Position numbers and translations under genes: made by a program
Shown: in pieces, positions 2,603-53,873 of the stretch
Layout of the letters: each line of letters opens with the position of its first letter
How positions within the stretch are numbered: position 1 is the first letter of the stretch
Notes under the pieces: model-generated
What the model was told of the DNA's origin: nothing
Databases searched by the model: none
What the model saw: only the letters and a program-made list of their open reading frames with translations
Origin: Trichoplax adhaerens
Taxonomy: Eukaryota > Animalia > Placozoa
Assembly (NCBI RefSeq): GCF_000150275.1
Contig: NW_002060945.1
Location: forward strand, 8,324,011-8,388,010
Reading direction: 5' to 3'
DNA: 64,000 bases

Positions 2603-5600
2603 AACTTTAACACTTTAATTGCAAACTATCGTAGTTTTCAACAACAAAAAGAAAATACGACGAACATAGCAAAATATATCTTCAATGGAATGATTTGTAT
2701 GAATTTTTTAGGATAAAGTTGGATATTTGCCATCTAAATAAAAAATTCATTGAGATCTATATTTTCCTATTTTCAATCAATACTTTATGCACTTATTATT
2801 GCTATCAATAAACGTAATTTTAAATAATAGAACAAATTTTTACATATAAATTAAATATTAAGAACTACTAAAAAATTACTTTAATTGAATATTATTGATG
2901 CAAATTACATACTGAAGCTATCGTTTCATGTTTTACTGATCAATCCTTGTCGGAATAGGAATAATAAACTATTCTGTTCATTTTCAGCTGTTACAAGCTA
3001 TGCAATGTGATAGTTTTTAAGCACGTGAACTTAATTTAGTGGAAACAGTTTCCTTTCGTAACAAGTTTTTATGCAGCCAAGCTAGATAGTGACATCTATA
3101 CAAAATTGAGCGCTAAACAATAATTCTCTATTTATCTTTCAGTCTACGGCTATCTTGATCCATATTGAATCCGAAATGCATAATACATTATTATAATTTT
3201 TTCCTAGTTAAAGATATCATTTTAAGTATATTGACTTTTCCTAGTCTTATACTGGTTTCTTTGAGGAAAAGCTACTTCTTCAAATAATACTTTAGTGTGC
3301 CGATTGCCTCTGGCTAAAGTAAGCTTTATACGGAAAATCCAGCTGGAGAATGACTACTTATTGTCATGATTAAGACAACCACAAGGTAATATATTGAAAT
3401 TGAGACCTACTTTCAGCCATGAAATTAGTTATTCTTATTTGGATTAAGTTTATTAATCAATCGATCGACTTTAAATTAATGCAGCAACTTAACAAATAGC
3501 TTTTTCTTCATTTAGTTAAAGTGAAATTGTAAGTTTATCAAGTAGTATAGCATTCCATCTCATTGTGAAGAGATAGCTTAAATCATAAATTGAAACTAAC
3601 TTTAAACTTGATGTAACTAGCCATTTTTGCATTGCCATCAAAAACTATATCTGCTAATGATTTATTATGATGGTTAGCTGCATAATTAATTACTAATTTT
3701 TCGATCGATAAAGATGGCATTATTGCTACCAAAAAACATATCTGCCTATGGTATATTATATTATTTAGCTGCAAAAAACAATTTATGTAGCGTTACTTGA
3801 ACATTTCTCATTTGATGGAGGCGCATATTAATAGATATTGTGAATTCTTAATCTTTCGATTGATAAAACAGACATTGTTGTATTGTATGAGACTACTTTG
3901 AAAAATTAAATTAATAATTGAGATAATATCGCAACTATTTTATATCTACGTTATATTAATACATACTATCACAGAACACCCATTCCTGTAAATTATTGAT
4001 GTCTTTAATAGTTTAATGCTTGACTCCGCATCACTAAACGTATTAGCAATAGCAGATATTTTGAATGCGGTATTGTTGTCTAGCAGCAATAGTAGAGTAT
4101 CGAAAAAATATATTTGCAAAGACAAGAAACGAGATAGCTTCCACTTTATTAGCAATTCATTTGAAATAAAACATTATTTTATTTCAATTGCGTTATTCTT
4201 GATGGATTATAGATTTAAAATCTACATTGTTCCATAATTTAGATAATATTAAAAAATTTTTTGTGCTGGTACATAAGCGAGTTATACAATGATCTGTGTA
4301 AATGAAAATAGCGACTATCCCTTCGTCTGCATCTAATTGGTTCTAATTTTAAAACGTTATCGTTGCTTAGCATTCTGCTACCTATCAACCATTTCATAGT
4401 TTTATTTTTTAAAATCAGGTTTTTAAGATTATGCTTTATTTCACTTACTCTGTATCTATCATCATTATGAAATTATTCTTTACTACAATCTCGTCCGTTC
4501 ATAATTGCTAAGGGCTCTTTGCTTATAATCCTTAATTCACCGATTAGTACCGTATTATACTACAAATATTGATTGCCCAAGCCTATCAAATTTTGATATA
4601 TTTAGAGAATAATTTAAATTTTTAATATGCGAAAGTTTTCATATACGTATCAAATCTATAGTTTAATATCGTACAAGTGCCTATAAAAATTTTAGATAAA
4701 AAAATAGACCCACGTTAAGAAATATTAAATAAAACTGAAAGTACACAAAAATGGTGCTTGCAGAAGTAAATTGCGCGATTCGTATATTTAACAACTATTA
4801 GAACGATCTTAATGCTATCGATTATCAAAGCCTTAATTTACAATATTAGTTAACGAATAGAATATTATTTTTTTCGCCATATTTAAAAATTCAAATTATT
4901 CTCTTTATTAGAAGCTTTAATTATGTCAATAGGCTAGTTAAGGAACATATCCTAAGGGGACGATCGTAATTTTACAACTTTATTTAGTAAATACAATTGA
5001 AAAGGCTAATTAATTCAACCATGTTTAGCTTTAATATTAAATTATGATTATTATGAGTTTGCCAACGTACGGCATATCCAGCTTTCTATAAATGTTTAAA
5101 TAAATAAATAATTATAATACTCTATTACTGAACACATTATTTGGCATTTTAAATGGATGCTCCTTTCTAATTTATTAAGTTTATGCAGTATGTTACTAGC
5201 TAACTTTCCTACTTACTTGCATCGATGTAGAATTCCGGACAATAAATTGTATGTCTCATGCTAGTAAGGTAATTTTGAATTGCAGCTACTCCTGCCGTTT
5301 ATCGAACTCTGTAAATAATCTCCAAAAAAACTACTAAATGTACCTTAAGTACTGTAAGGCTTGTGCTGTTCTTCCATCAACAATTAGTTATGAACCTACT
5401 AGCTATCGCTTTCCAACTCTGTATAACGAGCCGTAATGGTAATACTTTAATTATTTCTTGCTGGACAAATATCGTAATGTACGGTATCGTGTCAATTCAT
5501 GTGACATGAAATTCCATCCTTAACTCAATCTTTAATTCCTCTCGTATACGATGGTTGACTTCTATATTATATGTTTCGTGAAATATAAATATGACTTATA

Positions 5601-20374: not shown

Positions 20375-23300
20375 TTAGTCCATATCATCCCAATCAGACC
20401 CATCAGAACTTTCACTATCTGATCCTCCAATTTAGAATGGAAACAAAATGAAAATTCAGTGTGATTGTGCTCTCCTTATTTTATAAATAACGGATCAACT
20501 ATAAGGCTCTAATAACCGCTAAAGGGCCATTACAGTCTTACTTTGAACTCGAGGATTCATCCTAGCTAATTCTTTATCCAACGCAGTTATAATACTCGAC
20601 TCTTCAGCTAATGGAGGTGCTTTTTTTTTCATTTCTTCCGTCTAAAAATTATTACAAGGTTGAGAAGTAATGAAATCGGATGATTACTCGTAATTTAGGG
20701 TGTAATTACATTATGAACTTTTCTCAGCTCTATTCCTCGATGTATTTGATCAAAAAGTGATTCGCGAGGTTCAGAAACAGGCGGTACTGGCAGTGGTGGA
20801 GGAGAAGGAAGTGGTGGAGAAGGAGATCGCGAGGAGGAATAAGGTGGTAACGAAGCAGGAATAGGAATTGGTATAGGACCTGGAAGTGATGGAAGACATG
20901 GCGGTGGTGGGGGACATGGAGCTGGCGAGCCATGGACTGGTGGAAGACTTGGACGAGATAGCGATGGACCTGGAGGAGGAGGAGGAGGTGGTGGTGGTGG
21001 TGGTGGTGGTGGAGGAGGAGTGGTGCAGCAGTTTTGCCAGAATTAATCGGAGATTTTTGTTCTTTATTCACAGGTACCGGAGGAGGAGGAGGTGCTGGAC
21101 GTGGTGGTACACTATGCGATGATGTTTTCTTTTCCGGAGAACTATCATTCTTTCCTATAACACAACATTAGTACATTCCATATCGTTACACTACCCCAAA
21201 GCTGCAATATTTTCGACATGGAAGAAATTTAAAATCAAGCCAGTAATGACTGTAATCGTCTATGAATTACTAACGCTGTCTACGTAAGGTGATCTCTTTG
21301 TTGGCTTTTTCGATACCACCACGCTGTTCAACAACTTTATGCACCATTTGCATTATATTTTCATCATGGAGATCTGCTGTTGTTAAGCCAATGCTTGAAT
21401 ATAAATCTTTCCATTCCTCAGAAACCTCTTCGACCTTTTAATGAGAACAAAAGCATAATTCATTGCAACCACTGACAAGTTTGTGATACAAGTATGATTG
21501 ATAGTTATCTTGAGCTGTAATTAGCATTCACGACGGGCTACTTACTGGCAATATTATATATCAATAGACTTGGAACAAAATTCTACTTTATATTATCTTA
21601 TGATAGTTAAATGAAATTTCTGTCTACAATAGTCCAATTATTAAATTGTCAATTCTAGCAACAAGTATGGTAAAGCTTTTATACTCAAATGCTAAAGCTC
21701 TTCCTGGTTAGTACAATCATGAGAAAAAAATGAAAGATTAACTTTGAGCGCGGTCGTCATGGATTACTTACGAGAGATTTAGAATTCTCATCCCATCCAA
21801 CATGCTTTAAATGCCTAGTTGATCATATCATATTACTGTTAGTGATAATAATTATAGCAAATAGAATAATGATCAAATAATTTTTTAGCTTATGTATTAT
21901 GACGCACGAAACAGTATAATCTACTGTCTAAATTTTCAGTCTAAGTCTTAACAACGCTGGATGTTACCCTAATGCAAATTTACCTAAACTCTGTCGGTTG
22001 GGAAATATCCAATTTTGTCAATTTCTTTCCGCCTTTATCTCTGGGCCTTCGCTTGTTATGACTTAGATTAAGGCTTTTCACCTGAGCAGAATCTTTTCTA
22101 ACATAAGTATCCAATGGTTTATTGGATATCGGTTGTTGATGTTTGTTCTTTTGCTTACTTCTAGAGACAGCTTAATATTGCCAAGGGTGTTAATAAAACA
22201 AAATAGACTCATTTTATTATTCACATCGATTGGGGTATCATTGCAATAGCGCATTAAAAATTGTAATGAAGTTGCTAAATGGGAACATAATTCTTGACAT
22301 CGGCCATGATTGAGTTTTAATATCACAAGAATTACTCCAAGAAGACTATCAAATGAGCCAAAAATTCTTTAGAAAATAAGAAATTATGAATATCATTGAA
22401 TTACTTGCGTTTTTCTCTTTTTTTAATTTCAATTTATTGGTTAAAGTAAGGTAGAACGATGCAGCTTCATCGGTGTCAGCAAAATTAAATCCGGCTGTGC
22501 AATCCTAATAAATAGCCATGATTCACAATTGTAGTTAGCACATTTTTCAACATAACCTTATCATCTGTTGCCTGCCCGGTAGTTTGCAACAGTAAAAAAG
22601 TGCTAGAAACTGGCTTTAATCAATTGAAATATTATTCCTATCATACTTTAGTGTAATCAACTTACATGAGCTTGAAAGGTATGAAAGTATTCCGTCGATT
22701 TCTTATATTGGAAATTAAGATAGATTTCTTGCTCCCAAAGTAAGGTCTTTCCCTAAATAAGAAGACGTTCATGGATAATTATATTATTGATCGAGTATGA
22801 TCATTCCCGGAAGACTAGGCAAAACGAAGGTAAAAATTGTAATTTAGCTATAGGAAAAGAATGGGCTAGAATAAGACACGGTAGGTAAGATGAGATAGCT
22901 AGAAAGCTTCAAGGAGAAAGAGGGAACCTTGACCCACGCGAATAGTTTCGTATAAAACTACCAGTGGCAGTTTAATCCTCAGAATCAAACTGTAGTACCC
23001 CAATGTTTCCAGCCGTTAGCATGACACATTTAATCCTATAACTTATTCGCCTCGATTTACGGTTTCCTCTATCTTAAGGGTAATATTGGCGGCTTACATC
23101 TATTGCTAAGCTGATTATCGCCATGTTCATGTTTTTAAAGGATCATCATTAGACTACTTTAATCTTGACCACTATCCATGATGAATAATAAAATATTAAC
23201 AACGGAGAAGCTCGTAATAAAGCTTAGGCAATTTTTGATGTTGTACATTTTTGAAGGTATTATCATTAGTCCACTTCTATATTGACTATCGTCCATGAAG

Positions 23301-24586
23301 AAAATTAAGATATCAATGTAGATGCTTGTAGTAAAGCTTAAGGTAGTGTCTGATCATTTATGAAGGTAATATCATTAGTCTACTTCAGTAATGACTATCG
23401 TCCATGAAGAAAAATAAAATAACAATGGAGAAGCTTAGTAAGCTTGTAATATGGTTTAAGGAAATGTTTATGTTAGATCCACTCCCTCTAACTTGTAGTA
23501 GTATTCCTTAGACAGAATGAAAAATTGACCAATAAAGAGCAACTACTTTAATTCTAAATGCAGGAAAGAAATTAAAAATAGATCCATTGGATAGAACTAC
23601 AAGAGAGTACGTTAAAACATGGAGCATCTATATTGACTTGTTTTCCTTGTTGATTAACTTACTACAGGGCTAAATACACGAAGGAGATAGCATTTGACAG
23701 CGTTATCTTTGCATCTAGGCCGTATATTGACTTATTTTCCATATTGATTATTAACTTACTATAGGAATGAATACACGAAGAAAGTAGAATTTGATAGCTT
23801 AATCTTTGTATCTATATTGACTTATTTTCCATATTAATAAACTTACCACAGGGCTGTAGACACGAAGAAAGTAGGATTTGACAGCGTAATCTTTCACTAA
23901 GCAAAGTACGCCAGTACATTTTTTAGTCCACGATGATGGATTCGGTTGAGCAAGCTGAACTTGTACAACAGTGGTTGCTAAAGTCTACCTCAGGAAGCAA
24001 TATAAAATAATTGAAAATTATTTAATCCAGCTGCTATCAAGTTAAATCATTAATCTTCATCAACAATAATAATAGACCCATAAACCACTTTTAAAGAGAA
24101 TAGCAATGCAATAATATTGCTAAGCAATATAGCGTTAATAATCCTTTGGAAAGGAATTTTTCATACTATTCTAAAATCAAATAATCAACAGGCATAGAAA
24201 GCAATGCTTAAAAAATCTTGATCAAAACGCTATTTCAGTTTTAATACTTTAAGTGATGGCCATGATGAGATAAAAGACGAAAGGTTACTATATTACTAAT
24301 CTTATTACTTTTTGGTGTATCTAACTAAGTTTAGTTGATCAAAATCGAACCAGAACTTATTCAGTTCTCAAAATGACTACCGGCACAGGCTATTACGTTA
24401 GTCGGCTAGGAGAAAAGTAGACGCTTTTCGTTTTACCGGTACTTCGGCAACACTAACGATAGCTTTAACATAAATCAACTAGCGCCTTACCGTACACTTT
24501 TGGCTTGCTAATATGTCGAATATGACTCTGTTTTCTTCTTCAGTGAGAATTTTAGACGGTATATTTCTGTTTGTTGCCGGAGGCAT
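20375..24586 (-). CDS. WASP/N-WASP family Arp2/3 activator, paralog A (WH1-CRIB/GBD-polyPro-single WH2-CA)
   Basis: MPPATNRNIPSKILTEEENRVIF..; WH1 (WTKKCTGVLCLVKD..SYFLRVY, LLWEQEIY..FHTF, AGFNFADTDEA); CRIB ISQPTEFRHLKHVGWD; poly-Pro exon ~20720-21154; WH2 RESLFDQIHRGIELRK; C region IITALDKELARM; acidic tail DSESSDGSDWDDMD*. Confidence 0.93.
23135..23460. repeat. Intronic degenerate tandem repeat, 3 x ~110 bp
   Basis: Recurring atcattagtctactt..tgactatcgtccatgaagaaaa..gaagcttgta..aagctta. Confidence 0.8.
23625..23895 (-). repeat. Triplicated ~87-97 bp unit comprising the 3' end of WASP-A WH1 exon 2 plus its splice donor
   Basis: The copies translate KDYAVKSYFLRVYSPV|gtaagt (real exon), KD*AIKFYFLRVFIPI|gtaagt and KDNAVKCYLLRVFSPV|gtaagt. 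Confidence 0.85.
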
Positions 24587-34686: not shown

Positions 34687-37600
34687 TTAATCCCAATCAT
34701 CGGAATTAGTATCAGAATCTTCCGAATCGGTTGCTAAAAAATAAATTAAATAGCAACGCGTTACATCTTACATTTGAAATGTTGTCATAAAAGTAATTTT
34801 ACGACACTGAAGTTGACTATGCTAAGCCATTTTCTACCTGTTACTCGATCGTTTATCTTTGCTAATTCTATTTGCAGGGCTCCTAGGATACCGGTTTCTT
34901 TGACCGGAGGAAGGGGATCTTTCTGATCCATATCGACCTATTAACCATATCATCATTATCTTAATGATGCTAGCAGTAAACGATCATATAGTGTGTATTC
35001 ATACAAAATGAAAGATAAACAGTTACGTACTTTCTTCAAAGTTATTCCACTGCGTATACTGTCCAGTAAGTTATTTGATATACGCGAAGACGATGGTCTT
35101 ACGTCAGCTTTATCAGCTGGTTCGGTTTTTCTAAGATTGACTCCGGATTGGATTTGATCGAGGAACGAGCCCGGACCAGGTTTTACAGCTGGAGTGGCCG
35201 CAGGTAGTCTATTTTGTGTCGATGAAGGAGTAGAATCTACTAATGGACCAGGAGGAGGTGGCGGAGGCGGTGGAGGAATAGAAGCTGATGGAGGAATAGG
35301 AGCTGGTGGAGGAATAGGAGCTGATGGAGCAACTGATGGAGCAACTGGATGTATTGGAGGGGGTGAAAATGATGGAGCAGTTGCAGGTTGAACAGATACC
35401 GGAGGTGGCGGAGGAACTGTAAATGGTGACTTTAGAGGTTTTGCAACAGGTGACGGTCCAGATTGAGGAGAAGGAATGGATGGACGTTTAGGGTGAGATG
35501 GAGGAAGTGGAGGAGGCTCTTTAGTTGGTGCTGGGCGTGAAGGATAATGGCCTGGTGGAGTAGTCGTTGGGATTGGCGGTGGTGGTCGCGATACTGATAT
35601 AGGACGTGGAGGTGGACGAGAAGGACGTGATGGAACAGGCTGAGGTGGTTTCTTTGATGGTGCACTAGGAGGTCCACTAGAAGGTACGCTAGGAGGTATA
35701 CTAGGAGGTTGTGCTATAGAGGAAATAGGACATTCAAATACAACATTATCCACAGTATATGGACGATTAGGGTATTTTAAGCAAATTATTTTACCGCGTT
35801 GGCCTTGTATTTGTGATTTTAATTCTCGTGTTGCTTGTTCGAGACCACCATGTGCTTCAACAACAGTTTGTACAACCTTGAGTGTTGCTGCGTCATTGAG
35901 TTGTGCACCAGTTAGGCCAATGGTAGAAAATAAATCTTTCCATTCGTCTGTTACTTTGCTAATCTGTAAGATTGATAAGACAGTTTACTTCATTAGTGAT
36001 TGTTTTACATTATATCATTATTCCATTCAAGAAGCAAATCATTTCATTTGGATACTACAACTTACAAAAGATCCTGTATCTTTGTCCCATCCAAGATGTT
36101 CTACGTGCCTATGTAAGCCCATACGTAGTGCAATATTATCATTTATGATAAATAATCGAATACAGTAAACTGTTACAAATTGAAATAATGTCTAGTACTG
36201 CAACAGTAGTATCGCAAAATAGGGTACTAACCTAAAATCTGTTGGTCCTGATATATCTAATTTTGAAATTCTTCTTGGGCCTTTATCTTTTTTCTTTGTA
36301 GGCTTTTCCTTTGCTGACTTGCTCGAGTTCTCGTTGGTGATGACGGCATTCTTACTTGATTTCTGACTATTCTGTTGTTGTTGCTGTCGTTTTTGCTGTT
36401 GTTGCTTGACTTTAGTATTGGTGATTAAATTAAATAATATGTTTTTACACATTTTAAAAACGCATGTTGCTTTTCAAATGATTCACAACACCTGGCTAAC
36501 TAATTCAGTATACGGCAGTATAAAATTATTGACTCCATCATTATAGAATGTATTATCTGAATTCGTTTCCAGTAACTATCTCAATATATGGCATGTTTAG
36601 TTGTTATGGTAGACTCCTTCGACTATTCTTTCTATTGTACTATATACAATATTACTAATAAATTATGACGTTAACTTTGTGTATTATTTTCACTCACTTT
36701 CTTTTTTCTCTTTTCTAGATCTTAACTTTTCAGTTAAGATATTATAGAATTGTGTAGCTTCATTCACATCAGCAAAATTAAATCCTGCCACGCAATCCTA
36801 CAAGATAGAATATTTCAGTGACAATCATATTCGATAACACAGATGAATAATAATTTATTAGAATGAATCTTGTTGGCATTTTGCTAGTAATCTCAAGCCA
36901 GATTGAGTTTTGTATAAACAAGCAAGAACAAATTTGCTAAGTCTTACATGAGCTTGAAATGTGTGAAAGTAATTCTTTGTTTTCTTGTATTCGAAATTAT
37001 AGTAGAGTTCTTGCTCCCAGAGTAGAGCTTTATCCTTGAAGGTAATTTTCAACACGTTAATGAGTTATAGTGATTTATAAGAGCTATTTATCCACTCTAC
37101 ACATATTATAACATGATGGCAATAACGTAATAAGAACGTAAGCAAATGAAATAGCCCTGTGTATAGTGTTGATACAGGCAGAAAACTGAGTAAAGGATGT
37201 ATTAAAAATAATTGCCAATCATTAGCTATCATTATCTTTAGGGAAATGAACTTGATAGGTAATCCTGTTGCTGTCTAATTTCTATTTTTGCAATTTCATC
37301 CCCCCCCCCCACCCCTCTCCGCAATTTTCGATGGTAATTACTCTATCATCATGGTATAGAAATAGACAATATTGTGATAAGACACGATGGCTATTTTAAA
37401 GTGGTACGCTTACTTTAACGTTGAAGACACGCAGAAAATAAGATCGCAATGCACTATCCTTTACAAAGCAAAGCACGCCAGTGCATTTTTTAATCCATGC
37501 GTGTGAATTTGAGTGAGCCAGTTGAACTTGAACGACGGTAGTGGCTAATGTCTAGAATAATAAATAAAAAAAAATAATGTTATTATCGAATACTTGATTC

Positions 37601-41390: not shown

Positions 41391-43308
41391 TAAGGCCACT
41401 AATTTCTCGTCAAACCTCACTTTATTATATACTGTAAAGCAGTCTATTACTGTATATAATTGCAATTATGAAGGACTATCTACAGGGTATCTACATCGAA
41501 ACGAGTCATGTATTGCGTTAAGATCCCTAGGAAATGACAGTTGCCTTTGCATACTGCCTTTAACACCGATGATATTTTTAAGTGTAGATAGACTTTTAAG
41601 CAACATCATGGACTACAAGAAATGATAGCTAGTCTAATTTCAACAGTAGTTGTCCATGGTAACATGCATACTGCGCCTACTACTGGCTACCGTACAGTTG
41701 CATTAGATCATAATATTAGCTTCTTCCTTTCTGTGCCTATTATAATGATCCATTTGCAATGGTAAACACCCTCCCATCGTTAGCCTAGGCTACCATGATT
41801 TAAAATTTTTAATTGTTCTCATTAATTTGACATCTATTCTCTTGATGCAAATGACTTTAACAGGACTATAGTGGCGATACTGGGGCGTTGCATTCGACAA
41901 TTTTGCACGATTCTATATTTGAGAGGAGATTGCTTCCATTCTCTGTGCAAGCATCAATCTAATCCAAAAGCATACGTTAAGGTTAAGGTAATCCAGTCAA
42001 GTTGAAAGAATCATGTTATGGTATCCATTCCACCCATGTTAGATGGACTCTTATTGAAACAGTTGCCATTCTTTCTCATCCGTCAAACGTCTAGAATAGA
42101 ATCGTGATGTAAGTCGTTACTGTTGATTGTATTGATTTTCGTTTATTTTGATGTAAAAGTTTGTAAGAAGAAATGTCCATGACGGATATTATTGGATGAT
42201 GTTTTCAATATTGATACGACATGATTGATGATGATTGTAGAAAAGGAATAGCCTTCAACTCAGTACTTTCTCATAGATCGTATACTGTAAAGCATATCAA
42301 GCGATAGATTGGCACCTTTTCTTGACCATCTCCTTTCTGTCTAATGTCGCTCTCTTTAGTCAGCGTTAATGGAAGGCAGGATTAGTAGTACACTTTTGAT
42401 CACAAATCAATCGACCGGGACTAGTGAATAAAATCATATAAATCTACAAGTCATTTTTCGACGCTATTATAGGAGTACAGTAGACACCCTATTGAATTTT
42501 GTACAATTATTATTTTTTAGTTAGCAGAAGTAGTCTAGTGTTGATTAGAGTAGTCGATGGTGTTGATCACTCGGCTCCAAGTCACGTAGAGCATAGTCCA
42601 TTCCTAGCATTTCCAATAGAGGGAAAAAAGGATTCATTGGACTTTTCATTTCCTTTCGTTGATTAAACTTGTCAGTCTGAAGAAACGATCTAATATTACC
42701 TTGCCAATCCGACAGTATTGATAACAGGTAAACTGAAAATTGGACTGTCAGTCTAGAGCCATTAATCCAGTTTTTATTCATAACAGAAAGGTGACGATAA
42801 TACATTAACGCTAGTTTAGTACATTCGGCATCTACCGTATTCAAGAATTTTTCAATTTGTCATTCCATCGGCACTCTTTTTAATGTCGATATGATCATGT
42901 AGTCCGCATTTATACGACCATTTCAACTCCAGCAACACAATCAAATTGGGCATTTTCAAGCAGTTCTGTTACAGTTTATATTACCCAGGCTGAATTTGTA
43001 TAATTATTTATTCTTATTTTCTATTCATGTAGCAATTTATTTGTTATCGGCCCATGAACACAATATGTTATTTACGTTGTACAACAGTGAACTAGAAGTA
43101 AATCTACGTTTATCACTTCATCTACTTCTGTATGCTGCTATCGTTAACAGTGAACGGTTAAGCAATGGCAAGAATGATTGGACGCTTACATTATTTCGAG
43201 ATGGACAGTCATAGATTGTAATATTGGTAGAATTGTAATTGAATATCCTTGACTACTTTAGATAACGGATTCCGTTGAAGGAAACAACAACATTTGGCCA
43301 AAACGACC

Positions 43309-46300
43309 ATGGATTCTCATTCGTAAGTCACTTATTTCGCTACAAAACTATAATAACAGTGATGAGTCATTTTATTAGCATAGAAAATAACAACCAAGAC
43401 CAAATTCGATCCTGGTTTGTCCGTTCTGACAATGAAATAGGATGAGGATAGTGATTATCATCATCAGTCTTTACGAAAAGCGCTAAAACATGTTTGTGCA
43501 TTTCTTGATTCGTCCCTTGTGACATATGTATAGAAATTATGATCTCTCGTATTACTGCCATCGTGGAAATCATCTTCATTATTAGTCTTAACCAAGAGCA
43601 CTGGGACTGTTAATCCATGTCTCATTAGTCTGTTACGATATATGAATAATGTTCGATCGTTGTCGTCGTCGCAATCATCTTTATTAGTCTTAACTAAGAG
43701 CATGATGAGTCCATCCAATGATCTATCGTTGTCAACATCGTCATCTTTAAAGGTTAAATCAACCAAGAGCACTAGAACATGTTGATAGTTTTCTATTAGT
43801 CCGTTGTGATATAGGTATCATGATCTATCGCTGCCATCGTAGTAATCATCTTCATTAGACCAAGTTAATCGATTTATTATTAGGCAGCTACAACATCGTA
43901 TCATGATCGATCGTTGTCATCATCGCAATCCTCTTCCTTAGAACAGCTTGATAGGTTTTTTAATTAGTCAGTTACGACATGTGTATAATGATCGATCATT
44001 GTCATCATTAGTCAAAAGTCTTAGCCAAGAGTACTGGATATTAATTTAGTCTTTACCAACAACGCTAGAACATGTTAATGAGTTTTTTTGTTAGTCAGTA
44101 GCGACAGAGAGTAATGAATCGATCATGGTCATCATCATTCGTCTTAGCCAAGGACCCTGCAACAAGTTCATAAGTTTCTTATTAGTCAGAAGTGACTTAG
44201 AATGGTCTATCGTTGTCATCATGGGTTATTGAATTGAGTCTAATTTCAATTATATTCGTATGATAATTTTACGCCGACTGCTTTTACAATATTCAGAACG
44301 ATGATTAATAGCTATAGTTGGTAGAAAAATGTACATCCACTGCTCATGGCAGGCTACTTCGATTAATGAAGAAGGCATTTCTAGAATAATTTCAGCTACT
44401 GTCGGCTCCCCTTCAAAAAATAACAATTAGTAAGGGAATTGATAAACTATTCAATGATGATTAATTATTCGATCGCCTTAATCATCATAATTAGTTTTAA
44501 GGATAAATGCTGAAAAACAGTTCGTTTGCTACTTATTAGATAGCCGAAATCAGCGATTATTGATTTAGAATCCACAGTAGAGCAATTTGATAGCTGCTAG
44601 TTTGCCATCTTGACGTAAAAGACAATATCATTACTAATTGCTAATAGATAGTCAATATTAGAAAAACAAGCTGATCCGTAGTTCGATTCAGTAAAACTTT
44701 TCAAGGATTACAGTTGCTGTTTACCAAGAAAGAAAGAACCAGCAAAGGACTTGAAAAACGACCAGAAAAATGATCCAAAAGCTATTCAATCGTTTTAATC
44801 ATAACAATTAATCTAGCGATTATTCTAATTTCTCTACTATGAAAGAAACAATCAGTAAAAAAATTTGAAAAACTTGAGCAAAATAAATGATTGATCAGAT
44901 ATTGAATCGTTCTCATCATCATCATTAGTCTTAACGAAGAACACTGAAACATGGAACTTGTTTAGTTGTAATTAGCAATTATTTTACTGTAGTACGAGTA
45001 ACATAATTTTGTGCCTACTCACTTGCCCTATTATTACAATACTATTAAGAATAATTGCTAATAAACAGTAAACCGCTAGAAAAACACACATTAATTACTC
45101 ATCACCAACTAGTTTGATCCGACAAACAATTCAAAGACACATTTTAGTTGTTCTTTACCAAGAAAGAAACAATCAGTAAACTAAGTTGGAAAAAAAAGAT
45201 CGTTCCTATTCGATCGTTCTAATCTTAGCCTTAACCAAGAATGCTGAAACTTCAAATTTATTCCATTGTGATCAGCGATTATTTTTCAATTCAATAATTT
45301 GAGCAATTTTATGCCTACTCATCTCTCTGAAGTCAGCGTAATTATTCATAATTCATTGCTAATCGACAGTTAAACTGGTAGAAAAATACCCATCAAGAAT
45401 TTACAACAAACTACAGTAGTTTGATTCAGTAAATATTTCAAGAATGATTTCAGTTGCTATCTGCTAAGAAAGAAAGAATCAGAGAAAATGACTCGAAAAA
45501 ACTTTACCCAAATCAAGGATCCATCAGTTATTCTAAATCTTAGAGAAGAACGCTGCAACTTTCTTTCTTATTCCATAGTTTATGATCAGTGATTGTCTAC
45601 CGTACTTTTCACAGCATAACAACTTTATGGCTAGTCCTTTCGGCGTACCTTCATTTACCTTGATAAACGCATCGGTCCTTCATCAGTAAACGGATAGATA
45701 CAATAAACATTTCAACGATAATTTGCTATCTGTAAAAAGAAACAGTTAGTTAAAAAAGGGCTAGTGAACTTTGGCTAAAATACGTAGAAGAAAGTCAATA
45801 CTAGAATTGATCAACATACAGTGTCATTATGATTCCGGATTCTGGCTAATCGATGGCAGACTGATAGAAAAAACTGACCATCCGTAACTGGGATAGAGCC
45901 AGTCAATATTTCAGGGATGATTTGCTATTTACAAAAAGAAACAACCAGTTAAAAGGGCTTGTAAAGCCTTGTTAAAATAAAATCAATACCATAATTGATC
46001 AGTATACAGTGTCATAATGACTAAAAAAGGGCTTGCAAAACGATATTATTAAAATAAAATCAATACTATAATTGATCAGTATACAGTGGCATGATGACTC
46101 AAAAAAGGCTTGCAAAACGCTATTATGAAAATAAAATCAATCCTATAATTGATCAGCATATAGTATCATTATTATTACTAGGATTAGTTGCGAATCGAAA
46201 GTAGATTGGTAGAAAAAACACATCAGTTGGTCATCAGCAACTGGATTGATACAGTAAATCAATCGATCAGTATATGCGTCTTTCCAAGTATTCTTATTTC

Positions 46301-49300
46301 ATGACAGAATTGACGTTTCCTCAACCTAATGTCCTACCATAGTCCGTTGCTATATACAGTAGTAAGCTACCCTCGCTTGAAATGATGACAAATTGATCCA
46401 ACGGTCTTTCAAATTCGTCGATACACTATGTAGAAATTGAGCTGCTAACTCGTTGAATTGGGTAGCAATAATTATTTTACAATGCCAATTCATAATGATA
46501 ATTATTAGAAAATTGAAGGAATCCAAGAAAGGGCGAATAGACACGCCATTAGTCTACCACAACCCCAAGACTGCAGCGTTAAAGACAGATCCAGGTGAAA
46601 GGCTACTCTACACGTTCTATGGTATGGTGTACAGGAAAAGTAGAGGGAAGAAGGGATGGGATCAAATTGGAGATACTTTCCTACCGATATCTCTAATCCA
46701 GATGAAATCTTCCTTTGAAAATCCGTTTAAAATTGTTGTCAGCGATCAAAATATTCGCGTAAGTAACATTAACGCTACTTCCATTTGATCCTTGGATCAA
46801 GTCTACAGTTCTACTTGTACCCGATTTCACAATGGCTGTGGACCAATCTCCTTGCTTAGTTTTTCTTAAGTAGAATTCTCAATCCAATTTATAAATGATT
46901 CAATTCCATCATGCCACTCTTAAAAGAAACGATTGAATCATTCGCTAAATAGCTTGAGAATGATTGATACAGTCCTATCGACTTCATTCTTGCACTATTT
47001 TCATACTGTAAAAGAACACAAAAACGGATAAATCATTTTAAGCTAACAAAGATACAACAATTTATTTTGAAACCTAGCTGGTAGATTACCTTGTCTCGAC
47101 AGAGACCAAAACCAACATCGATAGCGGATTTGTACAATGGTTTTCCTATCAAAATACTTTTGGTGCTCGATTCTCCCACGAAAAATTAGCCACTGAGGTA
47201 TGTTTTAAAAGGAACTGGATAATCCTACAAGTACAAGTAGGCATCAATGTGATTACTCCAATAATATACGGCAATTTCCTACTCATACAACATACGTAAG
47301 CCATTTGCAATTTCTGTCCACTTATCCATTCTTGCTTGACTAGATGTTCCTATCAGGAGTAATAGTGGTTAAATCCACAGACTACTAGAAAAATAGACGG
47401 TATTTTCCCGGTAGTCGATGGTAAATCTATTACCAATATTAGACACATGGCATCGTTGTTCCTATCTTGAGTAGTTCAATTCACAGATGTCTCGAAAAAT
47501 ATAAGTTATTTTCCTAGTAGTTCATGATAAATTCTATTCAAGATACCAATATCGGACATGCGGGTACAATATAGTCTTTCTTTATCATGAGTAATAATCG
47601 TAGTTAAAATCTACGGACTACCGATGAAATGTACCTTACTTATTTTGCCAGTAGTCCATGATAAATCCAATACTAGCATCCATGTATGGCATTTTTATTT
47701 TCTTGTCAACTTGTCCATTCTTTGCTTCGCCACTAGTGGTTCCTATCATGAGTAATTAACAGTAGTTAAAATGGACGGATTGGCAAAGAAATGTACCGTA
47801 TTTATTTTGCAAATAGTCCATGGTAAACCCAATACTCTACCGACATACAACATAGGCCATTTGTAATTTCTACCAACTTAGCCATTCTGGCTTCGTCGCT
47901 AGTTGTTCCTATCATGAGTAAGGTAGTTGATGCTTGTCACTGACAACTTTAAAGTAGATACATGGCAATGCTCCATTAACCATAGGTAAATCCTACAACT
48001 ATGATCTTTATTGCCCACTATGCATCCTCTTGCCTAGTGTATTTGAGCATCGTTAAATGATGGTGGTGGTGTCATGGTAGTATCCTAGAAATTCAATCCA
48101 TTACTTCAAATTAATCGGAATAAAAAACCCAGATCGAGAAACACGGAAGCCATAAATTTTTACAGTACAGTATAATGGGTATCACCGATAAAAAATGCTT
48201 ATCGAAAGCTAGAGAAATAGTTTAGATTACTGATAGATAAAATCCAATTGCTACGATATTGTATTCATTAGCTTGATAGATGTAGTAAGATTGGATCATG
48301 AATTTCTAGCCATATTGGATATTGCTTCGTGTTGTACTGGCAATAAATCAACCAAATTGAATTTTATCAGCCCAAGAACTATGCTTCGCTTCTCCTGCAA
48401 AATCTCGACGGAATGATGGTTAAAGCCAAAACAAATTTCAAACTGATGATAAAACATTTTTGTCCTGATTTCAATGAATAATTTCATTTCCCTTACCCTT
48501 GGACGTAAATAATGTAAATTACATTCTGGCTGATAATTAATAAAATGATTGTTTTACTGTACTTAACTGCTAGAAATGTTTCTCCTTTTTCGTCACCAAA
48601 GTGTGATTTAGTCATTGACTTTTTACTACTGTCATGACGTGAATTAAGTTGAAAGTCTTTAAATTAATCAAGTTTTTCTCCTTGTTCTAGCTCCATTTTG
48701 CTATTGAACGAATGATTTCCACCATGGCACAAACAGCCAACTTAATCAGTAAAAATAAAGACTACTATGAAGTAAGTAGATTGTCGAGACTAATGGTAGA
48801 ATTTCATTCTAGACGAAAGGCTGAAATAAATTTCCAACTGGACGATAATCTATTCTTTTAGCTCTTACTTAATTTACTTTATGCTTACCTGTCGCACCGC
48901 GATATGCCCATATGTTGACGTATAGCCATCACAATTTCAACTTTAGACTAAAATAGTTCCGTTGCAAGCGGCTCGAAAAGGACGAGGTGGTAAACTAGCA
49001 AACGAAGTTGTTATCGAAGTCTACATTAACCATGCTAGTATAGCAACAAAGTTTTCAATGTCACCCAGGTACAGGCTTGTCTTCACATAGAGAGCTAACA
49101 TTTTTCGCTATTTACTTCTACTTAATTATAAGAAAGATCTTAGACAAGATCATTAGTAATGCTATCTCATGATAACGACTGTCCGATTTTTTATTTTCAA
49201 ATATATTTAACAATGATTCAAAAGTAGAATAAATAAAAACGATATAAATCTATTCCTTGACTGGTGCATCTCTAAAGGATTTAGTAGACTAATAGAAAAA

Positions 49301-52219
49301 AAATATATCGATTTCTTGAACAGTGCCTCTCTAAAGGACTTATTAGAAAAAATAGCTCAACATGTGGAAGCAAATCCAATCCAGTGTTTATTGGAATTAT
49401 CACCCAAACCAGATGGTACTAAACCTGAATATAATCCTCAGAAACCTGTTGGAGCTTTAAATCCAAAAGTAGTGCATTTCCAAGTCAAAGTGGACCCATC
49501 CAATACTGGTATGACCATTCCTCTATGCTATAACTACCAAAATGTAGTACTATTGCTTAGTTTCCATTAAGTTTCTATTCCACTCTTTATATCAAAATTC
49601 ACTTCTAGCCAACGTAGAAACTGCTAATGAAAATATTACCGAAAATGAGATCGCAATGACTGAAGAGACTGAAGATTTACAAGTCAGAAGTGAAGAAAAA
49701 CAACTCATCACATCCAACGATATCACTCTTACAATGGATAATAACGAGCATTTACCTCAGGAAAGGAAAGAAAACATCAACGAAACTGTCATTGAAAATG
49801 GAGTAGTAGAATCGAAAGAATCAGAAAGCAACGATGAGAGATCTAGTCTTCATAATTCTGATACCAATATCAACGATAGTACCATCATGGATACTGAAAA
49901 TGAGGATCAAAAACCTATACTTGAAAAGGAAAAGCCTATGGATAGCTCTATCCAAGATAATAATATGAACCAAACTGCAATGAGTAATGCTGAAACTGAA
50001 ATAATTGATGCCAACGTATCTGTTGATGCAGGAACAGTGGTAAAAGAAATTATTGACGATACAATTGCTCATGTTGTTAAAGAACCTCCACTCACTCATA
50101 ATGACGAATCGAGTAATATTAATGACGATACTATACAAAATGAAAGCTGTTTAGAAGATGTAGAAAATCATACATCTATCGCTAAAGAGTCTATCGAAAA
50201 TGATCGTAACCAAATGAGTCATGATTTAGAGACCTTGCCTGCAGATTCTATGACGGACGCGAACAATTTACCGACTGTCAACGATCAAAAGATTGCAACT
50301 GAAAGTCAGCAATCATCGGAAATGATAGAAGCAGAAGCTGCAGATGATATTATAAAAGAATCTAATTCTGCAAATGAAAATAATGATGAATTACACATTG
50401 CTAATATTGACCAGCTTACTAAAAATCAGAATGATAACCATCAACTTCCTCAATCTACAATTTTGGAAAGTAAAATATCAGAATTGGATACAAAGGAGAA
50501 TCATGCTACTTTAAATGATACTACAGAAAATATTCAATCTATAAATGATGAAACAACCACCATAACAGCCAATTCAGTAATCAATAAGGAAGGCGAAAGA
50601 CTAGAAGATAATGTAGACAGCAGTTCAATGCCTGTACAGGTCTGTTATAGATATAGTATACGCATATTATGAGTAAGATAAATTTTTGTGGAAATATGAC
50701 CAATAATCTGTTTCCCCTGATATACTATAGAATACGACAGCACCGCCATTACATGAACAATCAAGCCAAAATTCAAATATACAATTAACGCAAAATATAG
50801 AAGTAAGTAATGCTTGGAAATGATAAAACTAACATCATACGGTAATATTGACTAGTGGATCTAGAAAATTGGCGTGTGATAGTAATTTAAATTATCTTTC
50901 TACTTTTAAAATTTTTATAACTGTGTAAAGAGTAATGGAGGGCCTGTACTGAATAATGGATCAGCTATTCAATCTTCAACTAAAGTAGCGGACAAAATTG
51001 ATGCTTCTAATCTTCCACCATTGGCATTAGATCATAAACAGGTTATGGGACATTCTTTCACGCGCCAAATGTCATCTCCTGCTGAACTTGCTCCTACAAC
51101 TACACGTCGAAAGGCGCCAGCACCACCACCACCTTCTTCATCAGCTAGAAGAGATACTAAAGAAAGAATTAAAAAAATTGTTGCACCTCCACCACCATCA
51201 ATCATAAAGTCAGCTGGATTTACTGGTCATGATGTCTCATCATCCATTTCCGAAAAAGAAGAAGCAGAAAAATTTCAAAACGGAAATATCGGTCAGCAAC
51301 CTGCCAATGTACCTTCAGAAATTAATAGACCTCGATCTAGCACAGCCCCAACGCCTGATGACAGTAACAGAACGAGAAGTACTACAGCAATACAAAAAAC
51401 TAAAAAGCAGGCGCCGCCGCCACCACCGCTTCGGTCTTCGAAAGCAAATCCTTCTCGTATTGATAAGGTAATGGGCAAAGTTCTGAACTTAAAGTACTGC
51501 TTAATGTAGAAATGGTATCTTTACGATATTTTGTTCAATAATTAGTAATGTCCAATCCTAATTGAAAGATTCGTTGTTACCAATTTAAATATTTAGGTTG
51601 TACCTGGTCAAAACCCCAATGTATCCAGAAATGGCACAAACACTGGTAAAATTGCAGGTATGCTGTGTCTTTGATATGACACTATTTCCACATGTGTATT
51701 GAAAATCTATAAATTCTACTGCTGATTGTTTCAATGTCAATTAAATTCTGCTTTAAATTACCAAAGTTAAAATTCTATTTCATACTTGACGATATCTATC
51801 ATTGAAAGCCGTAATCTTGCTATCCTCTCAAGTATATTTCCGTGTATGAATTTACAGATACTCAAGGGAAAAAAGCTGAAAATCTAGTGTTTAATGTCCC
51901 CCCACCACCACCAGGCAAACCTCCAGCGAAATCTCAAAAGCCTGCTTTGTTAAACTCAGATGTCGATCTAAATCAGTTGCATTTTAATGGAAAATCAATG
52001 ATGGATCTTTTGCAAAATGATTCTAAATTTAAAGGTAACATCTTATTTATCTCATTTTTAAACGGATACTGGACGTAATTATTTAAATTGAAGAAATCAT
52101 CTATTTTAAAGCGATGTTTTAAATCAGGAGATCAAAATAATTACTTGAACTGGATCTTAACATCATTTGTTATTGAAAATTTTCTCACAGATTGGTTGCC
52201 AAAATCAGCGGCAAACTGA
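43309..52219 (+). CDS. EVH1 + Cordon-bleu-type ubiquitin-like domain + acidic disordered region + 3 KRAP-like/proline motifs; Cobl/COBLL1-related actin regulator candidate, 12 exons, ~892 aa
   Basis: Exons 43309-43322, 46509-46758, 47078-47197, 48691-48771, 48947-49068, 49324-49508, 49609-50639, 50731-50802, 50931-51467, 51597-51657, 51858-52034 and 52191-52219 join in one open frame. EVH1: GMVYRKSRGKKGW..FKIV..GFVQW..FGARF..A. Cobl-like: SLKDLLEKIAQHVEANPIQCLLEL..YNPQKPVGALNPKVVHFQVK. Motifs RRKAPAPP, KKIVAPPPP and KKQAPPPP. The first exon is the least certain. Confidence 0.8.
43450..44220. repeat. Degenerate intronic tandem repeats, ~60-110 bp units
   Basis: Recurring gatc(t/g)atcgttgtcatc..atcatctt.attagtcttaaccaagagcact.gaacatgtt. 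Confidence 0.8.
44430..46260. repeat. Degenerate higher-order intronic repeats (~300-430 bp units, then ~60-bp units at 45950-46170)
   Basis: Anchors tagaaaaa..tagtttgattcagtaaa..tttaccaagaaagaaacaatcag at ~44660, ~45080 and ~45380; aaaataaaatcaatac.ataattgatcagtatacagtg x3. Confidence 0.7.
45412..45418. mobile_element. Probable Tc1/mariner excision footprint (TA -> TACAGTA)
   Basis: aac-TACAGTA-gtttgatt versus sister copies aac-TA-gtttgatc (45110) and ccg-TA-gttcgatt (44679). Confidence 0.6.
47290..47920. repeat. Degenerate intronic tandem repeat, ~5 units of 110-165 bp
   Basis: Core ttcctatcatgagta(a)..gttaaa..tattt..tagtccatg.taaat at ~47347, 47459, 47580, 47740 and 47906. Confidence 0.75.
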
Positions 52220-53873
52220 CGTAAACTATCTAAATACAGCTATAGTTACAGAAGACAAGCCGATGAGCAAAGTTAATAATTCTTTCAAATCTTGATAGTA
52301 CCGTATATACTTTTATCACTCAAACAGCATTTAATTTTATATATTTTGCGTATATGGTTATATACTAGTGGGTAGCCTAATTTGGTGAAATATTTTACAA
52401 TGCAGAAAAATTTTTAATAACTTAAATATTTTATGGATGGAAATTAAGTCAATACTTGAAGTTATATCAAATTTACCTGTTTACTGATATCATCTAAGGT
52501 AATCTAATCGGCTAACTACGCTTTTCTTTTGGAAGGGTTCGTTACCCTACGAATTATTGAAGGTATTAGCGTTTCTGCATTCACATTAATTCTTTAATTA
52601 AGAGGTCTATATGTTAATACAATGATATGATCTGCAACTGGTGACAGACTATAAGATAGCTTTAAGAGATTCTTAAGTAAAGCGAAGGCTACACATTGTG
52701 AATGTATTGCTATTGAACTGTTAATAAAATTCTTTTTTTAATTTTGGAACGTGTTTACTTTTTTTAAAGGCAACGGCTTAAATATTATCGTATCGAAGGG
52801 TTCGGTCATAACCATATTCTTATTCGATATTTGAAAGCATTACATCAGTACCAAATTTCTTAAGTTTACCTCATAAATGTGCACTATTGTATAGCTTCTT
52901 GGTATTGACACATACGGTAGTAGCATAAATTGTATAGTAGTTTGGGAAAACAAAGTTATCCGTTGAGCCGTTCAAAAACTATAAATCTTGCAAATTTTGC
53001 TTGGTTTCAAAGACATTCAATTGCAACAACAACGCAATAACCTCATAAAATACCGCAAAATATCATTAATGGATGCCATTTTATGATTATTGAGTAGCAC
53101 GGGACTTGTCATTACAATATTGTTATTAAGCCGCATACATTAATGGATTTACATCCATATATATTGGAAAATTATTGAAAAATTTGACATACAAAGCAAT
53201 CGGTAGGCCTTACAACTTTTTTGTCATCTAGAATGCTTAAGCATTACAGTCAGGGCGCTTTAAGTTCGCATCTTATTCATGTATGAACTTTCGATGACAT
53301 CACTTTATAAATGAACGAACAGCTATATCAATGATAATATGCTTGTAAATTGCGTATATGTTGGATAGGTTTATAGTGCTGGATTTAAATATTTTACTAC
53401 TTGACCGGAAATAATTAATACACCTACAAATTATTTCATTCATCTTAAAGTCATATATTCGGCTATACTCTTTTCGCGAATATCATGTATTAATCATAAT
53501 GTATATAACTTGTTATAAATTAACAGAATTTCATAATTGTGATCCTTTAGTAAAGCCTTTGTTACTACAATTTTAGGAACTTTCCATGAAGCATATCGAT
53601 AAATACAACACGAATATGGTATAAATATAAATGTCGGGACATTGAAGAAATGTAGCAAAACTTAATTGCTAATTACTTCGATTAAAAACAGTATGACAAT
53701 AAGTTCAATGTCCAGCAACTTTAGTACACAGCTATCCATAATGATAATTATATTTGAAGTTTTAAATAAGGTTGAGATAGTACAAAAGACATATAAAACC
53801 AGGGAAACTTAACTCATCATAATATAATTAACGAGAACTCCTTCTTATGCTCTATATTCAGAATTAGGAACCA

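Follow-up and report, generated by a model that had tools for sequence, protein, structure and literature searches.

The window analysed here is a stretch of 64,000 nucleotides from the placozoan Trichoplax adhaerens (contig NW_002060945.1, positions 8,324,011 to 8,388,010). On its plus strand, at 43309-52219 of the window, lies a gene whose product joins an EVH1-like domain, a ubiquitin-like domain (UBL), an acidic spacer and three proline-rich motifs resembling the KRAP motifs of the Cordon-bleu (Cobl) family. There is good evidence, drawn from sequence and intron positions, that this gene is the orthologue of an unannotated gene in coral-type genomes. On balance we favour the reading that the cnidarian "WH1 + cobl" protein has its placozoan counterpart here, a non-catalytic cortical adaptor and not an actin nucleator, and, jointly with this, that Cobl and Cobl-like have in the cnidarian protein a pre-bilaterian relative of their N-terminal "Cobl homology" region.

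Cobl and Cobl-like have been studied as vertebrate actin-assembly factors. Published work traces their origin to the base of Bilateria and to the fusion of a cobl domain with a WH2 domain (PMC3849942). In 2013 Schultz and Terhoeven described a protein of Nematostella vectensis, GI:156394513, with a cobl domain, a WH1 domain (75-186) and no WH2; no cobl domain was found in the Trichoplax proteome by the hidden Markov model (HMM) search of that study (PMC3849942). An initial annotation of the present stretch, made from the letters alone, had taken the combination of EVH1 and Cobl for undescribed. The published Nematostella case overturns this, and coral-type genomes carry the same gene. Since the combination was noted in 2013, in a short note without functional work, our finding is incremental. 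New are an expressed, divergent member of the WH1 + cobl family in a placozoan, a conserved exon structure common to the family, and KRAP-type motifs in its pre-bilaterian members.

Gene model and EVH1-like domain

The DNA of the window is eukaryotic and AT-rich, and its introns are short. Contigs from four public runs (X1, X9, X5 and X6) were mapped on window positions 46300-52250. X9 is recorded as RNA; X1 runs evenly over exons and introns and is DNA-like. The depth of X9, X5 and X6 is 40-110 in exons and 0-9 in introns. Contigs of these three runs, which come from three studies, give eleven GT..AG joints and a loose end, together 12 exons. The loose end, which precedes 46509 in the contigs of all three, corresponds to 43293-43322 and is directly followed by a GT donor. 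The start codon at 43309 stands in ACCATGG and is preceded, 33 nt upstream, by an in-frame TGA, the stop codon ends at 52219, and the exons, joined in a script, leave the frame open for 892 codons. The 12-exon open frame of the initial annotation was thus right in exon count, coordinates and quoted peptides, and the splicing check it had called for comes out in its favour.

The exons, all on the plus strand, are as follows.

Exon 1, coding part, 43309..43322, plus: 5' untranslated region to at least 43293; loose end of the X9, X5 and X6 contigs
Exon 2, 46509..46758, plus: residues 5-88, N-terminal half of the EVH1-like domain with the conserved W55; RNA joints
Exon 3, 47078..47197, plus: residues 89-128, EVH1-like strands, F106-x-Q108-W109 and F116-G117..F120
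Exon 4, 48691..48771, plus: residues 129-155, C-terminal helix of the EVH1-like domain; RNA joints
Exon 5, 48947..49068, plus: residues 156-195 and two bases of codon 196, linker and presumed first two strands of the UBL; RNA joints
Exon 6, 49324..49508, plus: residues 196-257, helix and last strands of the UBL
Exon 7, 49609..50639, plus: residues 258-601, acidic spacer; full RNA contig coverage
Exon 8, 50731..50802, plus: residues 602-625; RNA joints
Exon 9, 50931..51467, plus: residues 626-804, Pro/Ser-rich with three KRAP-like motifs; RNA joints
Exon 10, 51597..51657, plus: residues 805-824; RNA joints
Exon 11, 51858..52034, plus: residues 825-883, PPPPPGKPP and then the start of the tail, KSMMDLLQNDSKFK; joints in X9, X5 and X6
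Exon 12, coding part, 52191..52219, plus: residues 884-892 (DWLPKSAAN) and the stop codon

The protein accordingly reads EVH1-like domain (about 34-150), UBL (about 172-252), acidic spacer, three KRAP-like motifs, PPPPPG and a short tail. The idea that the model merges an EVH1 gene with a separate gene for a UBL/proline-rich protein, or that it follows a misassembled transcript, is largely refuted, and we give this reading hardly any weight. It could appeal to introns 1 and 3, which at 3186 and 1493 nt are long for a compact genome, and to X5 and X6, each of which needs two contigs for the gene with the break between exons 3 and 4. It has against it one contig of X9 (record 16, 1891 nt) that runs from exon 1 through exon 8, so that exons 2-3 (EVH1-like) and exons 5-6 (UBL) lie on one mRNA. 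In addition, the joint between exons 3 and 4 (47195 to 48689) is present in X9, X5 and X6, the reading frame is open across every joint, and the order of EVH1-like exons followed by UBL exons is kept in five coral-type loci. The claim that both domains belong to a single gene, in a non-bilaterian animal, therefore stands.

Two further observations concern the transcript data. In X6, three CT..AC joints of depth 5-13 (47005/47090, 47223/47295 and 47741/47848; GT..AG on the minus strand) suggest a weak spliced antisense transcript at 47005-47848 of the window, overlapping exon 3 and intron 3. Furthermore, the runs differ from window 46300-52250 by many single bases and by a few insertions or deletions of 1-7 bases in introns, an indication that the animals sequenced were diverse in strain or in alleles; variable positions in exon 7 are 49692, 49815, 49885, 50010, 50392 and 50448.

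The EVH1/WH1-type domain had been proposed from the motifs W, F.QW and FG..F, which are located in exons 2-3. Searches of Pfam, the PDB and protein collections were done exon by exon, and spliced domains entered only local hhalign and hmmsearch comparisons; the domain in question is split over three exons. Pfam WH1 (PF00568) gave no match to the exon 2 or exon 3 frames. In the Pfam scans of the genome, which were six-frame and covered the 105.6-Mb assembly of 1414 contigs, WH1 matched 14 sites, none of them at this locus. A family profile was then built from the aligned exons 2-4 of seven loci and compared with five WH1 domains that Pfam detects in the same genome (one Homer-like, one VASP-like, two WASP-like and one more). 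By hhalign the two profiles align over 79 columns in register (Prob 60%, P 8.6e-5), with the family Trp on the WH1 Trp, F-x-Q-W on F-h-Q-W, FG-x-RF on YGLxF and the helices aligned. The real score of 30.4 compares with a maximum of 19.4 in 300 column shuffles, and a reversed control gave P 0.29. Exons 3 and 4 by themselves reached P 2.2e-5 against WH1 and exon 3 by itself P 9e-4 against the true WH1 exons; exon 2 by itself was not significant (P 0.057). On the strength of this profile-profile comparison we accept the N-terminal domain as EVH1/WH1-like, as had been proposed, and as too divergent for the Pfam model once it is split into single exons.

In Ena/VASP and Homer, the W and F-x-Q-W residues line the groove that holds the proline peptide. 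Trichoplax W55, F106, Q108 and W109 occupy these groove-lining positions (corals have K instead of Q), and a proline-rich ligand of the EVH1-like domain is therefore plausible.

Coral-type relatives and the ubiquitin-like domain

A full HMMER scan of exon 2 against 1.8 billion representative proteins returned eight matches. One of them (P0001), which alone matched in a separate protein-database search with exon 2, is 77% identical to the exon and comes from another placozoan-like genomic contig (L012/L013). Five others (P0004-P0008) are exon-sized relatives of exon 2 with E about 1e-4. The remaining two (P0002 and P0003) were rejected as relatives, being long, unrelated bacterial-type proteins. 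A search with profile A4 returned 36 exon-sized fragments, all of them unannotated open reading frames; these protein searches yielded no full-length relative that was spliced or annotated. Exon 2 is 37-40% identical to the coral-type loci, with E-values of 7e-12 locally and 9e-5 against the 1.8 billion proteins.

Among the contigs of relatives examined (L010/L011 and L014-L019), the coral-type gene lies, unannotated, on L010/L011, L016, L017, L018 and L019. The relative on L019 is from a scleractinian coral, since the adjoining DnaJC9 gene shares 90% identity or more with the DnaJC9 proteins of Montipora foliosa and M. capricornis. The coral-type gene begins with one exon that holds an N-terminal KRAP motif (SSKQRAPPPPQK) together with the EVH1-like domain's first half. 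Next come a 40-residue exon bearing F-V-K-W and FG-x-RF and a helix exon, then a UBL over two exons (UBL1) and a second UBL in one exon (UBL2). A proline-rich exon with KRAP-type motifs (in L010, KSKRRAAPPPPP) and at least one very long exon (1381 residues in L010) complete the order. Through the EVH1-like domain and the first UBL the exon/intron layout is that of the Trichoplax gene, which likewise has KRAP-type motifs; the N-terminal KRAP motif, the single-exon second UBL and the very long downstream exon are additions of the coral-type genes, and these have no counterpart of the acidic exon 7.

The splice sites bear this out. The 40-residue exon 3 is bounded by AG and GT at identical places in all seven loci, the boundaries of exons 2, 3 and 4 are phase 0 in the coral-type loci and in Trichoplax, and the phase-2 split codon that ends exon 5 falls in the same alignment column in the Trichoplax UBL and in five coral-type loci. 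These common intron positions through the EVH1-like domain and the first UBL are the ground for the orthology stated above, and they answer the initial annotation's call to look for the architecture in other animals: the same gene, its introns identically placed, is present in coral-type genomes.

In three of the loci (L010:3066-3803, L018:232-834 and L019:2106-2765), DnaJC9 is found 7-10 kb upstream of the orthologue. Conserved synteny with DnaJC9 was rejected for Trichoplax, whose DnaJC9 is on another contig (C1413:8077013).

The relatives are also what connects the gene to Cobl. Their UBL2 scores 26.5 bits against Pfam Cobl in L017 (cut-off 25) and 20.4-20.7 bits in L018/L019. In a search of PDB sequences with the UBL2 profile, 2DAJ, the ubiquitin-like domain of human COBLL1, was the sole match below 0.01 (E 0.0025 over 64 residues). 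An AlphaFold2 model of UBL2 is a beta-grasp with a predicted local distance difference test score (pLDDT) of 90; 2DAJ ranks third among its structural matches, with a template modelling score of 0.78 and the highest identity (28%). UBL1 and UBL2 of the relatives are homologous (hhalign Prob 93%, P 4e-7). Since the best solved match of UBL2 is 2DAJ and UBL1 is homologous to it, the coral-type gene has tandem Cobl-type UBLs after its EVH1-like domain.

In Trichoplax there is one UBL only, at the UBL1 position. The segment that the initial annotation had assigned to the Cobl UBL, DLLEKIAQHVEANPIQCLLEL...PVGALNPKVV, is encoded by exon 6, and the predicted fold of this fragment is helix-strand-strand with pLDDT 82. 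We consider it very likely that the segment is a beta-grasp domain, and likely that it is orthologous to coral-type UBL1. Of the earlier assignment, the ubiquitin-like character is supported, and relatives that share the exon structure have a UBL with 2DAJ as its best solved match. The Cobl part finds no match of its own to Pfam Cobl or 2DAJ; that label is indirect, resting on position, intron phase and relatives and not on the sequence of the segment itself.

Set against the Cobl kinship is the possibility, which we think unlikely, that the gene encodes a lineage-restricted EVH1 scaffold with no specific relation to Cordon-bleu, a generic beta-grasp or Ras-binding-type UBL, and ordinary polyproline ligands for SH3 domains or profilin that arose independently. 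A number of results weigh against the reading we favour. At exon level, Pfam had no match to any exon frame of the gene, and the Pfam models Cobl, WH1, WH2 and RBD, run on the six-frame genome, matched elsewhere and not at the gene. No EVH1 or ubiquitin-like match came from phmmer and profile searches of the PDB with exon 2, exon 6 and the exon-wise alignments A1, A2 and A3, exon 2 like exon 6 matching no solved structure by its sequence, and searches of the ESM Atlas with exons 6 and 2 gave scores below 0.9 and nothing useful. For the UBL in particular, Pfam Cobl (PF09469) matched neither the exon frames nor the locus in the genome scan, and exon 6, as a single sequence or as a profile, matched no PDB sequence, 2DAJ included. 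The UBL2 exon, Cobl-type in the relatives, has no counterpart in the window. With the relatives' UBL1 HMM, hmmsearch gave the Trichoplax UBL 0.4 bits; neither the UBL1 nor the UBL2 HMM was significant singly, and the score of a joint UBL1+UBL2 HMM was matched by 11 of 3000 shuffles. By hhalign the Trichoplax UBL aligned with the relatives' UBLs at P 0.029, equalled in 8 of 300 shuffles, and at P 0.018, equalled in 2 of 300. The exon 6 fold is that of a fragment, with the relatives included in its alignment, and its Foldseek E-values exceed 0.5 and are not significant, although most of the matches listed are ubiquitin-like folds. UBL2 itself does slightly better with Pfam RBD than with Pfam Cobl (30.2 vs 26.5 bits in L017, 24.9 vs 20.4 bits in L019), and in the structural comparison many ubiquitin-like folds match it about equally. 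Finally, the KRAP-like motifs are short and lie within proline-rich sequence, and no WH2 was detected in the Trichoplax gene, as described below.

What speaks for Cobl kinship is 2DAJ, by its singular place among the PDB sequence matches of UBL2, where no Raf-type RBD appears, and by its identity among the structural ones. Moreover, the coral-type order of a KRAP-type motif, tandem UBLs and more KRAP-type motifs mirrors the Cobl homology region of Cobl-like (PMC8282341), and an independent HMM search named the Nematostella domain cobl (PMC3849942). If Trichoplax lost UBL2, this would also account for the failure of the 2013 HMM search to detect a cobl domain in its proteome.

As a separate observation, UBL2 stands near or at the cut-offs of both RBD (Raf-like Ras-binding) and Cobl in four loci (L010:15621-15854, L017:17879-18112, L018:19429-19662 and L019:15837-16067). 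This double scoring raises the question of whether Cobl-type UBLs bind small GTPases.

Acidic spacer, KRAP-like motifs and C-terminal tail

The 343 residues of exon 7 carry a net charge of -61 and are rich in D, E, N, S and T, in keeping with the acidic exon of about 340 residues noted initially. The spacer is probably disordered, and no homologue of it was found in the protein database within the range of 206-654 residues. The three basic-Ala-poly-Pro motifs noted at the same time are likewise all present, in exon 9:

RRKAPAPPPP, 51105-51134, plus: KRAP-like motif at residue 684
KKIVAPPPP, 51171-51197, plus: KRAP-like motif at residue 706
KKQAPPPP, 51402-51425, plus: KRAP-like motif at residue 783

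As far as their sequence goes, they resemble the K-r-R-A-P-p-P-P (KRAP) motifs of the Cobl family. [quoted passage not shown]

The C-terminal tail, KSMMDLLQNDSKFK followed by DWLPKS, crosses the RNA-supported joint of exons 11 and 12 (52032/52189, cut +2), which is present in X5 and X6. It had been put forward as a degenerate WH2, and were it one, the gene would be a true Cobl-type actin-assembly factor, its C-terminal KSMMDLLQNDSKFKDWLPKS binding G-actin and the protein promoting the formation of filaments together with SH3 partners. An LKKV/T-type motif following the helix is part of the definition of WH2, and the tail has none after its helix. Pfam WH2 matched neither the exon 11/12 frames nor the locus, both tested in pieces, a test that is incomplete for this candidate because it spans the exon joint; the same model found seven sites elsewhere in the genome, including those in the two WASP-like genes nearby. 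By HMM-HMM search, the Nematostella WH1 + cobl protein is likewise without WH2 (PMC3849942). Two features fit the actin-assembly reading: the amphipathic MMDLL of the tail lies at the very C-terminus, where COBLL1 and invertebrate Cobl homologues have their single WH2 (PMC3849942, PMC8282341), and the PPPPPG stretch is directly upstream of it. The degenerate WH2 is not supported, and we regard a factor of this kind as improbable.

Proposed role, neighbouring genes and known systems

The adaptor that we favour may work as follows. The KRAP-like motifs, by analogy with Cobl-like and its three KRAP motifs, would bring in SH3 proteins of the syndapin/PACSIN type; FCH/F-BAR genes are present in the Trichoplax genome, for example at C1404:313897 and C1411:2768569. 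The EVH1-like domain may dock on a proline-rich partner or on the proline stretches of its own protein, profilin could be a ligand of the PPPPPG stretch, and the basic motifs may be shielded by the acidic spacer. In the Trichoplax lineage, the N-terminal KRAP motif and the second UBL would have been lost.

Our results suggest that the KRAP motif and UBL part of the "Cobl homology" region predates bilaterians, joined to an EVH1-like domain and without detectable WH2. If so, the link to syndapin-type SH3 domains would be older than the actin-binding function, and Placozoa would be added to the range of the family despite the missing cobl domain in the 2013 proteome search. Trichoplax, being small and simple, is also an animal in which the role of a WH2-less Cobl relative can be asked for. 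A more far-reaching scenario, which we put forward tentatively and think rather doubtful as a whole, is that the ancestral Cordon-bleu-type protein of early animals was an EVH1-containing, WH2-less adaptor with KRAP motifs, EVH1 and tandem UBLs that linked SH3/F-BAR membrane shapers with proline-rich partners. From it, bilaterian Cobl-like and Cobl would derive by loss of EVH1 and gain of WH2, and the Trichoplax gene would be a reduced survivor with one UBL and an added acidic spacer, its EVH1 perhaps folding back on the protein's own polyproline as an autoinhibitory switch.

Two tandem WASP/N-WASP-like genes lie upstream on the minus strand, at window 20716-23987 and 35028-37551; together with the EVH1-like gene they make three WH1-type genes within 32 kb.

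WASP-like gene 1, Pfam WH1 exons, 22666-22758 and 23829-23987, minus: weak WH2 below cut-off at 20716-20772
WASP-like gene 2, Pfam WH1 exons, 36726-36797, 36951-37049 and 37414-37551, minus: weak WH2 below cut-off at 35028-35075 and 35109-35168

Elsewhere in the genome, a WH1 domain that looks complete is encoded in a single intronless frame of 155 codons (L009; G000:C1412:4409477-4409668), unlike the other WH1 genes here.

Among the EVH1/WH1 proteins (Ena/VASP, Homer, WASP/N-WASP and SPRED), the likeness is confined to the N-terminal domain, which aligns in register with the WH1 of the Homer-, VASP- and WASP-like genes of this genome. The UBL, acidic spacer and KRAP motifs match none of these families, and the Trichoplax gene is without their EVH2, coiled coil, CRIB/VCA or Sprouty domain. 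COBLL1 and Cobl have UBLs flanked by KRAP motifs, the syndapin SH3-binding "Cobl homology domain" (PMC8282341), which the three KRAP-like motifs of Trichoplax recall. Unlike in COBLL1 and Cobl, these motifs all follow the UBL, and the UBL reaches no Cobl model. Conversely, COBLL1 and Cobl lack EVH1 and end in one (COBLL1) or three (Cobl) WH2 domains, undetected in the Trichoplax gene. Also among the closest known systems is the Nematostella protein GI:156394513 which, by its published description and together with the coral-type relatives, has an N-terminal WH1 followed by a cobl-type UBL, without detectable WH2. Compared with it, the Trichoplax gene has one divergent UBL in place of a cobl domain that Pfam detects, lacks the N-terminal KRAP motif and carries the 343-residue acidic exon. 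In the coral-type loci, the EVH1-like domain lies about as far from the N-terminus as it does in the Nematostella protein.

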